A DNA stretch of 64,000 bases from positions 186,001 through 250,000 of the forward strand of contig NW_003314363.1 in NCBI RefSeq assembly GCF_000143415.4, written 5' to 3'. Positions 58,332 through 63,005 of this stretch are shown here, in pieces. This stretch comes from Selaginella moellendorffii. Lineage: Eukaryota > Plantae > Lycopodiophyta. The notes under the pieces were generated by a model. The model did not search any database. It was given only the letters and a program-made list of their open reading frames with translations, and had not been told where the DNA came from. Each line of letters opens with the position of its first letter. Positions within the stretch are counted from its first letter, which is position 1. The position numbers were made by a program, and so were the translations under genes.

Positions 58332-59044
58332 TGAAACGAGGCATCAATAAGAGAGTGAAAGAAATTCTCATATATTTAATATAAATCGATATAAATTCTT
58401 GTACTATCTAAATATTTTTAATTTCTATATTTTTATATATTTTAAAATATTAAAACAAAAATACTTAGATGGAATAAATATTACAATAAATCTAGTCTTC
58501 TTTCTAGATCAAATCTGATCTCATTCTCTAGCACTTTTGCAAGTTCAACTGTAATTAAAGTGGACTCCGTGATTTGAAGCTTGGTTCTGTCACAAAAAGA
58601 TCTCCAAAAGTCAGATGAACAGCAAACAATATTCTTGAAAGCAAGGTGCCTTTTCCTTTTGCCCGTTTTCTTCTTCTCATCCAGGATTCTTGCCATGCTG
58701 AAAGCACGGCACTCTGAAAAACTTGTCATCTCCTTACAAGAAAGTTGGCAAAACTGTACATCTCTCACACATTGGCCATCTTTTCCAGTGGGCAAGTCAG
58801 AAACTCCTCTTGGAAAATTTGGGTACTCCCAAAAGTCAATCCTCTCCCGGGTGCTCATCGGCTATAAGAATCGATCAATCTCAAAAGCTTTTGAGCAACA
58901 AAGGGAGCTTTCAGTGCCAGCGGCAGTAAGTTACAAAGAAAAGCTCTCTAGATGGATCTTAAGACCTGTCGTGGTATCTTTCGCAGGCTGGATCACTTCA
59001 CATACCGATCGATCTGATTTGGCAAAGCTATAACAAGCACGAAG

Positions 59045-60761
59045 ATGGCGACCACCACCACCAACAAGAACGACCAGCTCAACGTTCTCGACGCGCTAGA
59101 CACAGCCAAGACGCAGTGGTATCATGTCACGGCCGTGATCATCTCGGGTATGGGCTTCTTCACCGATGCCTACGATCTCTTTTGCATCTCCCTCCTCACC
59201 AAGCTCCTGGGCCGGATCTACTACTACGACCCCTCCACTGGGACGCCGGGCGAGCTCCCAGTGAGCATCAATGCCGCCGTGAGCGGCATCGCGCTGTGCG
59301 GCACCTTCACGGGCCAGCTCTTCTTCGGCTGGCTGGGCGATCGCCTGGGCCGCAAGAGAGTCTACGGCATCACCTCCATGATCATGGTCGTCTTCTCCAT
59401 CGCCTCGGGCTTCTCGTTTGGATCCAGCGCGCGTGCAGTCATCGGCACGCTCTGCTTCTTCCGCTTCTGGCTGGGATTCGGAATCGGCGGCGACTACCCG
59501 CTGTCCGCGACGATCATGTCCGAGTACGCCAACACCAAGACGCGGGGGGCGTTCGTGGCGGCGGTGTTTGCCATGCAAGGCGTGGGGATCTTGGTGGCGG
59601 CCGTGGTGACCATGGCGGTGTCCGGGGCGTTCATGGTGGCACTCAGAGCCCCCAGCTTCGAGGAGAGCCCCGGACTGTCCACGCCGCACGAGGCCGACTA
59701 CGTGTGGAGGATCGTCTTCATGCTGGGCAGCGTCCCGGCAGCGCTCACGTACTACTGGCGGATGAAGATGCCTGAGACCGCGCGGTACACCGCGCTCGTG
59801 GCCGGGGACCTGGACCGGGCAAACGCCGACATGAGCAAAGTCCTCCAGGTCGACCTCACGGACGATCACCATCGTGGCGTTGATCATCAGGTACTTTGGC
59901 CTCCATTCTCCTTAACGTTTGTTCTTTGGCTTGAAACAGTTCAAGATTGCTAAGAAGGTCCAGGCTCAATCATCCTTCCCGCTCTTTTCATCACGCTTTG
60001 CGAGGAGACACGGCCTCCACCTCTTCGTCACTACCACCACCTGGTTCCTCCAGGCCTTCGCCTTCTACAGCCAACAGCTCTTCCAAAAGGACATCTACAC
60101 CCAGGTGGGATTCATCAAGCCCGCCAAGACCATGTCCGCGCTCCAGGAGGCGCTGGTCACCGCGAGAGCGCAAGCCCTGGTGGCGCTGTGCGGGACGGTC
60201 CCGGGCTACTGGGTCACCGTCGCGCTCATCGATCGCCTGGGCCGCAAGCCCATCCAGCTCCTTGGCTTCCTTATGATGGGCACTTTCATGTATGCTCTGG
60301 CCGTCCCCTACGAGAGCTACTGGCGGGGCAAGCACCTGGACGCCGCCACTGGCAAATACCAAGGCGGCCACAACGTTGGCTTCGTGGTGCTCTTCGCGCT
60401 CACATTCTTCTTCGCCAACTTTGGACCCAACAGCACCACCTTCATCGTCCCCGCGGAGGTGTTCCCCGCGCGGCTGCGCTCGACGTGCCACGGCATCTCC
60501 GCGGGCGTGGGCAAGATTGGATCCATCCTGGGCGCCTTTGGCTTCGTCTACGTGTCGCAGCCGACCAGGAAATCCGAGCTCCCGCGGGGATACCACCACC
60601 CGGGGATTGGGATGAGGAACGCGCTGCTGCTGCTGGCCAGCGCCAGCATGCTGGGCTTCTTCATCTCGCTCCTCATGCCCGAGACCAAAGGTAAGAGCCT
60701 TGAAGAACTCTCTGGTGAAAGCGTCATGAATGAAAGCAAAGTTGATGTTCAAAGTGTTTAG
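59045..60761 (+). CDS. PHT1: PHT1 family phosphate:H+ symporter with one 49-nt intron (59891-59939) and an atypical TM7
   Basis: [12 protein letters not shown], signature [59 protein letters not shown]. Confidence 0.96.
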
Positions 60762-61803
60762 GCTATATTAATAAATTATGGAATTTTCAGTAAACACGCA
60801 TGGAAACCTAAAACGGAAAATGAGAAAGGAGCGTAAAGGAGCGTATAGATTTATCAAGTACCTATGAGAACTATATAAATTTAATTCCAGTTGTAAAGAG
60901 TACTTTTCCCTGCTTCTGGGAGCTCCTTTTGACGTGGCGATCCACCGAGGTGGCAGCGCCATGTGTTTGGCGCCAAAAGCTCAGAAGATTTTTATTGACC
61001 TAGCTTTCGATTCGATCGATGCGCCTGGCAGCAGATCGCGCGCACACACGGGAGGGCGCTGCCGCGACTGGCAGTGAGCGATCCCGCGCTCCCAGAATCC
61101 TTTCTTTTTTCCCCTCTTGCTCCTCCTTTCGCTCTTTTCTTATTGCGATTCTTTGTCGCGTATGTTGCAAAGGCTACGCAACAGAGGCTGAGTGTAGCTG
61201 TAATGATTCCCGAGCCCACAATGTGTCGCATCCATTGCCGTAGCTTTCCACTCTTCTTTTTCGGCTCCTCTACTGGAGAGCTCCAGGCCATTTGCTGCTC
61301 ACAGAGCGCACCATCCCACTGCGATTTGTCCTTCTACGAATCAGATCTTCTGCGCACTGTCGAATGCGAGTATTTTTTTTTTCCCCCTCAATTGACAATT
61401 CCACATTGGTTTTGTGTGATTAGTTTAAAGAAATGAAGATGAGCCAGCGCTATAAAGGGTGGAGGCCTCCTCGTCTCAGGGAAGTGGTGTCTCATTGCAA
61501 AGAATTCCACGCTCCTACAGTCCAGAGGTGCCTCTTCGAAAGCTTGGTGAGTTTTGTCATATTTTTTTTTCTCTCACTCTCTCTCTCTCTCTCACCCCCC
61601 CTCGACCTCCTAGATTCTTTCAGGTTGTTTCGGCTTTCCCGTGTTTTATTTGCTCGCATGCCTCTTCCCCCGGTTCTTCTAGTTCGTGTTTTTGATTTTA
61701 AAATGCACAGTCGATTCGATTTTCATCTAAGCCTACTCACTCAGGACTGTGAGATTCTTTCCCTTGCAGGCTAGCGTTTCACAGCTCCCTTTCGACATCA
61801 GCT

Positions 61804-63005
61804 ATGGGAGTGGTAGCGCTCGAGAGCTTTGAGCCGGCTCTGACACCTTCTCTCGATCACAGGGATAGCCACCACTCTGATCAGGAAATACCATCCATTG
61901 ATCTATTGCCTTTTTTCGAGCCAGATTCATCCCCAGGCATCGCAGCGGGCAGGGAACGAATAATTCAGGAGATCGCCAGAGCCTGCGAAGAATGGGGATT
62001 CTTCCAGGTTGTCAACCACGGCCTCGACTGCGACTTGATAACTCAGTCCCTCCGGGCTTCCAAGGATTTTTTCGATCTCTCCATGGAAGAGAAGATGAAA
62101 GTGAGACCCCCTCCAGGAACTTGTCCCGTGCCCATGGGATTCTGTCACAACAGTGGAATTGACGGCCTTGTGGAGAGAAAGGAACATCTTTTCTTCTTCG
62201 CTGAGGATGGATCACCGACGAAGTCACCTGACAGTTTCTCGAAGTACAACGTTTGGCCGGTAAAGCCACAAAACTTCTGGTAAGACCTCTACTGTTCTTC
62301 TTTCTTCTTTCTTTCTTAGTCTCTGGGATTGATCGCAGCTCAATTGTCCGCGAGCGACTTATTGTCGAGGGCCAGAGAACAGCGATTTTCCTGCTGAGTC
62401 TTATTTCCCGGAGCTTGGGACTGCCGGATAACTTCCTGTACGAGCACTACAAGGAGAAGATGAACGCTCTCATCATGCTCTTCTACCCGGTTTCAGACAT
62501 CCCGGAAGACATCGGCCTCCACAAGCACCAAGATGGGAACATTCTCAGCGTGGTGGCACAGAACGAGACCGAGGGACTCCAGGTCTTGAAGGACGACAAG
62601 TGGATCACAGTCAAGCCACGGACGGGGAGCTTGGTTGTCAACGTTGGCGACATTGTCCAGGTATGCTTTTCTTCTTCGTGATCTCCATTCTTTCATGCTT
62701 AGAAATTCATGGAGCTTTTACTTTGTCTCCCTCAGGTGTGGAGCAACGACAGATACAAAAGCGTCCAGCACCGAGTCATCAACAACGATCAAAACGTCCG
62801 CTACTCGTTCGCCTTCTCCTGTGTTCCTGGAGTGAGCACACTGGTAGCTCCGCTCCCGCAGTTCACTAGCGAGATCCAGCAGGCCCCGCGCTACCGGGAG
62901 TTCCAGTATGGGGAGTACATGATGTACAGATTCGAGAACAAGAAGATCGTATCCAAGAACTCGGAGGAGATCACCATCAAGTACTATTCAACCGCAGAGG
63001 AGTAA
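61804..63005 (+). CDS. 2-oxoglutarate/Fe(II)-dependent dioxygenase (DOXC class), 3 coding exons
   Basis: IPSIDL, ACEEWGFFQVVNHG, HQD iron motif, VVNVGDIVQVWSNDRYKSVQHRV, RYS 2OG motif. Confidence 0.95.

Follow-up and report, generated by a model that had tools for sequence, protein, structure and literature searches.

A transcribed PHT1 paralogue of Selaginella moellendorffii under purifying selection carries alanine in place of the conserved TM7 aspartate

The window, a stretch of 64,000 nucleotides of Selaginella moellendorffii DNA (contig NW_003314363.1, positions 186,001 to 250,000), contains between 58.9 and 60.8 kb a single gene on the + strand that encodes a PHT1 family phosphate transporter in two coding exons. 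The first of these (59045..59890, +; 282 codons), recognised as an ORF with matches to Pfam Sugar_tr (3.5e-30) and TIGR00887 (333.6 bits), encodes the N-domain with TM1-TM6, which is 66-73% identical to canonical PHT1s, and includes the VFAMQG motif. It is separated by a phase 0 intron of 49 nt with GT..AG borders (59891..59939, +) from coding exon 2 (59940..60761, +; 273 codons plus stop), an ORF encoding the C-domain with TM7-TM12, which scores 296.1 bits against TIGR00887 and matches the rice transporter OsPT11 (PDB 9kmq) with an E value of 4.4e-69. The resulting ORF of 555 codons is intact across both exons, and the TM1 motif and the ANFGPN motif, both cited by the initial annotation as signs of an otherwise intact frame, were found in the translation. 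When tandem copies were searched by tblastn of both exons against the window, only the gene itself was matched.

Transcript evidence was obtained from the contigs of four runs from four studies, one of them labelled as a second organism (organism B, X9), which were placed on positions 58700-61100. Contig coverage had sharp limits at 58987 and 60795 in the three runs extending to the 3' end, whereas X9 ended at 60463. Such sharp limits indicate that the material is RNA, and a 3'UTR could be assigned to 60762..60795 (+), with depth falling to zero beyond ~60795 in the runs covering the 3' end. Exactly 49 nt, corresponding to the intron between the coding exons, were skipped in X2 record 11 (1555 nt) and in X6 record 12 (1428 nt); therefore, the mRNA is spliced as modelled. 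Every contig of the four runs starts at 58987, right after an AG, and a single X2 contig carries 17 further bases joined to this position, a loose end (TTTCAGTGCCAGCGGCA) that matches window bases 58909..58925 (+). The common start and this match together reveal a 61-nt intron in the 5'UTR (58926..58986, +; GTAAGT..CAG), preceded by the 3' end of an upstream 5'UTR exon. The PHT1 gene is thus transcribed and spliced, the contigs being a record of transcript presence and not of level or tissue.

The surroundings of the gene were inspected for P1BS sites (GNATATNC), and none was found between 48289 and 63652, a region that comprises ~10.7 kb upstream of the gene and the gene itself. The absence of P1BS from 48289 to the gene is a faint hint that it may not belong to the classic phosphate-starvation regulon. 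Elsewhere in the window, between 7968 and 9187, the palindrome GCATATGC, which fits the P1BS pattern, is present in five copies, three of them exactly 93 bp apart (8994, 9087 and 9180), a spacing that suggests a tandem repeat. Downstream of the gene, at 61804-62681 (+), the ORF list, the only source for this observation, contains pieces with ..WGFFQVVNHG.. and ..LGLHKHQDGNILSVV.. that resemble exons of a 2-oxoglutarate/Fe(II)-dependent oxygenase.

Both exons matched models of two profile libraries. Exon 1 aligned with positions 4-217 and exon 2 with positions 255-448 of Pfam PF00083 (Sugar_tr), as expected for both domains of an MFS sugar-porter-type fold. The matches to TIGR00887, the equivalog model of the phosphate:H+ symporters, cover profile positions 2-257 and 267-502, and the simple sum of their scores is 629.7 bits compared to a cut-off of 610.3, with the exons scored apart and not as the joined protein. 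In its fold, length, Sugar_tr halves, family signature and C-terminal motif the protein is like other plant PHT1s, such as AtPHT1;1 and OsPT11 (PDB 9kmq/9kou). The closest full-length protein retrieved was SELMODRAFT_106380 (XP_002977245.1, P0323), a canonical paralogue from the same species, and there is no region of P0323 in which the window protein outranks the angiosperm PHT1s. Between TM9 and TM10 the window gene keeps a loop insert of 18 residues (60321..60374, +) homologous to an HWRGxxCxxxxCxGxH insert, with both Cys replaced. This extracellular loop insert is common to gymnosperm and Diphasiastrum PHT1s and absent from angiosperm PHT1s and from P0323.

The initial annotation had drawn attention to TM7, where an Ala was read in place of the Asp that follows the conserved Trp by four residues, together with L to Q, I to F and N to Q replacements close by. 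All these changes were borne out by the translation and by alignment. Codons 60042-60068 read TGG TTC CTC CAG GCC TTC GCC TTC TAC, and within the TM7 pocket segment (60042..60080, +; canonical WFLLDIAFYSQNL) the W and the Y are kept and four residues are changed, namely L to Q (60051-60053), D to A (the GCC codon at 60054..60056, +), I to F (60057-60059) and N to Q (60075-60077). A phmmer search against all PDB chains aligned this helix with 'ttttwfllDiafysqnltq' of OsPT11 (9kmq, E 4.4e-69) and with 'wflvDiafy' of PiPT (7sp5). Therefore, the Ala encoded at 60054-60056 occupies the site of OsPT11 D314, PiPT D324, AtPHT1;1 D308 and Pho84 D358.

That the Ala codon could be a sequencing or assembly error is already refuted by the transcript contigs, and its probability is negligible. 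Not a single letter of 60030-60085 differs in the contigs of the four runs from four studies, including the run labelled as another organism, so that the codon reads GCC in all four runs and not the GAC that the initial annotation had considered for reads or cDNA. Moreover, at least five further nucleotide changes would be needed to account for the replacements of L, I and N nearby.

The extent of the changes along the protein was assessed, with the rows of the two exons merged, on an alignment of 105 full-length PHT1s, in which conservation reaches 97% or more in 222 columns. Of these, 205 (92%) are kept in the window protein and 17 are changed; the canonical Selaginella paralogue differs at 5, three of which are shared with the window protein. 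Seven of the 17 changed columns are 100% conserved in the 105 PHT1s and correspond, with AtPHT1;1 numbering, to V76 (to I), L105 (to S), L307 (to Q), D308 (to A), N315 (to Q), Y409 (to F) and A446 (to G), so that the L, D and N columns of TM7 are all invariant, and these three changes cluster within nine residues. In the TM11 pocket segment (60495..60530, +), the pocket Lys (AtPHT1;1 K449, at 60513-60515) is kept, with A446G on one side and A452S on the other, both in columns conserved to at least 97%. The protein thus departs from the plant PHT1s in the L307Q, N315Q, A446G and Y409F replacements and, above all, in the TM7 Asp, one of the OsPT11 Pi-pocket residues described as 100% conserved in plant PHT1 (bioRxiv 10.1101/2025.08.04.668567).

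Despite these changes, 11 of the 12 PHT1 residues mapped by mutagenesis (mapping after PMC6761603) are kept in the translation. They comprise the equivalents of D35, D38, R134 and D144 of the proton relay, with the motif FFTDAYDLF in exon 1, and those of the pocket residues Y145, F169, Q172, W304, Y312, N421 and K449. The Pi-binding set formed by Q172, W304, D308, Y312, N421 and K449 is incomplete, with five of six residues present and Ala at D308. No new Asp or Glu was found in any TM helix of the window protein. Therefore, the only carboxylate of the pocket has been lost and not relocated.

Phylogenetic trees were built with IQ-TREE (LG+C20) from 28 rows, with the two exons analysed apart. 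The C-domain was placed within the land-plant PHT1 clade (100/99 against the outgroup representatives), adjoining the Selaginella and Diphasiastrum PHT1s (81/78), with an end branch of 2.23 compared to 0.50 for the Selaginella paralogue (~4.5x) and a median of 0.44. The N-domain fell in an unresolved lycophyte/fern grade, with an end branch of 0.47 (paralogue, 0.35; median, 0.23). Pairwise identities to canonical PHT1s were 69-74% for the N-half and 58-67% for the C-half, whereas the canonical paralogue was 71-81% and 68-77% identical, respectively, to the same sequences. According to both branch lengths and identities, the divergence is thus strongest in the C-domain, where the Asp was lost. 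A past phase of weaker constraint may account for part of the long branch of this domain.

This concentration of changes bears on the possibility that the substrate itself has changed, as a remodelled, more positive pocket with no carboxylate, new Gln residues and an altered TM11 might carry another anion or an organic phosphate in place of orthophosphate. The three invariant-column changes within nine TM7 residues and the two further ones that flank K449 on TM11 leave room for such a change, and the acceleration specific to the C-domain would fit it. However, five of the six Pi-coordinating residues are unchanged, no precedent was retrieved for a PHT1 with another substrate, and the sequence points to no particular alternative. 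A changed substrate is regarded as rather unlikely.

The initial annotation had also asked whether proteins with the same QAF signature form a clade. No protein above 63% identity (exon 2) or 73% (exon 1) was found in a representative library, used for exon 2, and in word searches that spanned proteins of 150-478 aa (exon 2) and 166-528 aa (exon 1). Thus, no QAF clade was found among proteins of up to 528 aa, and as a full-length orthologue of ~555 aa falls outside this range, such a clade may exist in other lycophytes. Long-term retention of the Ala state is accordingly unproven, with no orthologue from other species found among proteins of up to 528 aa.

The selection acting on the gene was estimated from the differences between the window and the contigs. 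As alleles or haplotypes with ~1.5% divergence, these differ at 25 positions of the coding sequence, of which 21 are synonymous and 4 are non-synonymous. The non-synonymous sites are all grouped in the variable loop between TM5 and TM6, and in the organism-B run 12 of 12 differences were synonymous. The pN/pS ratio was 0.064 (405 synonymous and 1213 non-synonymous sites), and for a neutral gene the binomial probability of finding no more than 4 non-synonymous changes in 25 lay between 1e-9 and 2e-8, according to the assumed transition bias. Therefore, with variation that is almost exclusively synonymous, the gene is now under purifying selection, as measured over the shallow divergence (~1.5%) of alleles or haplotypes.

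These data also bear on the view of the gene as a decaying or neutrally evolving duplicate, a young pseudogene with a frame left open by chance. Its C-domain branch exceeds all others in the tree, and it has lost a near-invariant Asp as well as both Cys of the loop insert, as a pseudogene might. Against this, the frame of 555 codons is unbroken, the two introns are removed correctly, 92% of the highly conserved columns are kept, and 21 synonymous versus 4 non-synonymous differences speak against neutrality with P ~1e-9. A pseudogene is therefore strongly disfavoured and considered very improbable. The earlier proposal that the changes represent something other than simple decay is upheld by the intact ORF, the spliced mRNA, the nearly exclusive synonymous variation and the 205 of 222 conserved columns kept, and the opposite outcome that it had contemplated, a gene that is unexpressed and neutral, is at odds with both the transcripts and the neutrality test. 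The functions that it suggested, a new substrate, an uncoupled carrier or a sensor, are all candidates between which the sequence does not discriminate.

The rarity of the Asp loss was examined in 453 fetched homologues that align across the TM7 site, a sample made of 50%-identity cluster representatives of the whole family, fragments and full-length plant PHT1s. Asp was present in 444 of them, and the exceptions were mostly singletons, mis-modelled or fragmentary entries. An apparent second Q-A case, P0028 from Sesbania, aligned as '...MLQAIWF...', was discarded as a singleton mis-modelled gene in which TM7 is replaced by unrelated sequence. Another singleton, P0299 from Ancistrocladus abbreviatus (466 aa, annotated as PHT1), reads WFLLGIAFY, with D to G and no neighbouring change, which may reflect pseudogenisation, an error or a loss of very recent date.

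The only replicated exception is formed by P0390 and P0154, from a gymnosperm-like lineage ~74% identical to Cryptomeria, Ginkgo and Wollemia PHT1s, in which TM7 reads WLLFGVAWY, with D to G and remodelled neighbours. P0390 (L001:70-1665) is full length, with 531 aa, and was recovered in mRNA contigs from four or more runs, and P0154 corresponds to L005:68-1006. As in the window gene, the same Asp is missing and its TM7 neighbours are remodelled in a PHT1 that is expressed and that keeps both its relay and all other pocket residues. In contrast, its loss is independent (Gly and not Ala), it belongs to a different clade, and it keeps the Cys-Cys loop insert. The 9 synonymous and 12 non-synonymous differences between P0390 and P0154 suggest that the constraint on this lineage is weaker. 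Together, the D to G lineage and the D to A change in Selaginella indicate that the TM7 Asp was lost at least twice in land plants.

The consequences of changing this Asp have been reported for several transporters of the family. In OsPT11, Pi is hydrogen-bonded by Q178, W310, D314 and N425, with an electrostatic contribution of K453, and was seen bound at pH 5 and absent at pH 8; transport is largely reduced in the D314A and D314N mutants (bioRxiv 10.1101/2025.08.04.668567). In contrast, AtPHT1;1 D308A retains partial activity in yeast and in planta, and its authors doubt a direct role of the Asp in Pi transport (PMC6761603). For yeast Pho84, D358N leaves 20% of transport or less with signalling unaffected, whereas D358E abolishes transport and keeps half of the signalling (PMC3824880). 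Therefore, the statement of the initial annotation that Pho84 D358 mutants retain signalling agrees with the published data. Its view that the Asp is needed for transport is in line with OsPT11 D314A/N and Pho84 D358N, but is too strong for plants, given the partly active AtPHT1;1 D308A, and loss of transport in the window protein is for the same reason not implied.

The engineered proteins AtPHT1;1 D308A, OsPT11 D314A/D314N and OsPT2 D305N carry an equal change or a neutral mimic at the same site as the window protein. They are, however, single laboratory substitutions in canonical proteins, with reduced or partial activity, whereas in the window gene the change arose naturally, stands among other changed residues and is preserved by selection. 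Yeast Pho84 D358N/E, also from the PHS family and changed at the homologous Asp, are of interest as mutants that separate signalling from transport (PMC3824880), although the fungal protein has the Asp in its wild type and signals to PKA, and no comparable pathway is known in plants.

By analogy with these yeast mutants, the window protein might be a non-transporting Pi receptor or regulator that signals as Pho84 D358 mutants do, or that modulates canonical PHT1s by hetero-oligomerisation. Pho84 D358N/E lose most or all transport and keep signalling (PMC3824880), and PHT1 is regarded as a good candidate for a plant transceptor (PMC8933713). The conservation of the pocket residues other than the Asp and the lack of P1BS between 48289 and the gene would be compatible with such a role. 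However, the whole proton relay is conserved under purifying selection, and its conservation argues somewhat against a pure receptor, which would not obviously need it; AtPHT1;1 D308A still transports (PMC6761603), and a signalling partner or pathway is known for no plant PHT1. A receptor or regulator of this kind is thus also rather improbable, to the same degree as a changed substrate.

The explanation that best accommodates these data, to which about an even chance is assigned from the sequence, is that of a functional PHT1 paralogue in which the conserved pocket and relay are still in use and no Asp is left to act as protonation switch. The gene is a transcribed and selectively maintained PHT1 (PHS family, MFS) paralogue whose C-domain has diverged fast and whose TM7 carboxylate has been lost, with accompanying changes in TM7 and around the TM11 Lys. 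The protein would still fold, reach a membrane and bind phosphate or a phosphate-like oxyanion in the conserved pocket, but without the protonation/deprotonation switch that gates low-pH binding and triggers release in PiPT and OsPT11. As Ala mimics the neutral, protonated state, binding would be less dependent on pH and release would be slower. A low-turnover or differently coupled carrier is thus predicted, comparable to AtPHT1;1 D308A, OsPT11 D314A/N and Pho84 D358N, and selection may have preserved such a protein for a specialised role, whether kinetic, regulatory or related to the substrate, and not for bulk uptake.

A bolder proposal, drawn from the yeast analogy and given a still lower probability than the plain receptor or the changed substrate, is that the gene encodes a natural separation-of-function PHT1, which would bind Pi, barely transport it and be selected as a receptor of external Pi or as a regulatory subunit of canonical PHT1s. 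If this is true, a plant PHT1 devoted to sensing would be described for the first time, in one of two or more land-plant lineages that lost the Asp independently. In plant PHT1s, signalling has so far been inseparable from transport, according to a review (PMC8933713), and the window gene is a candidate for this long-sought separation of sensing and transport, which reviews describe as not achieved experimentally (PMC8933713).

The TM7 Asp stands at the centre of the current mechanism of phosphate:H+ symport in the PHS family, in which its protonation allows Pi binding and its deprotonation triggers release. An expressed, natural PHT1 under purifying selection that lacks this Asp is a ready-made test of how essential the protonation switch is. 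If the protein is merely a poor Pi transporter, it would be little more than an oddity within a gene family of lycophytes; with a role in sensing, in regulation or in the transport of another anion, it would represent a new functional branch of a well-studied and agriculturally important family.
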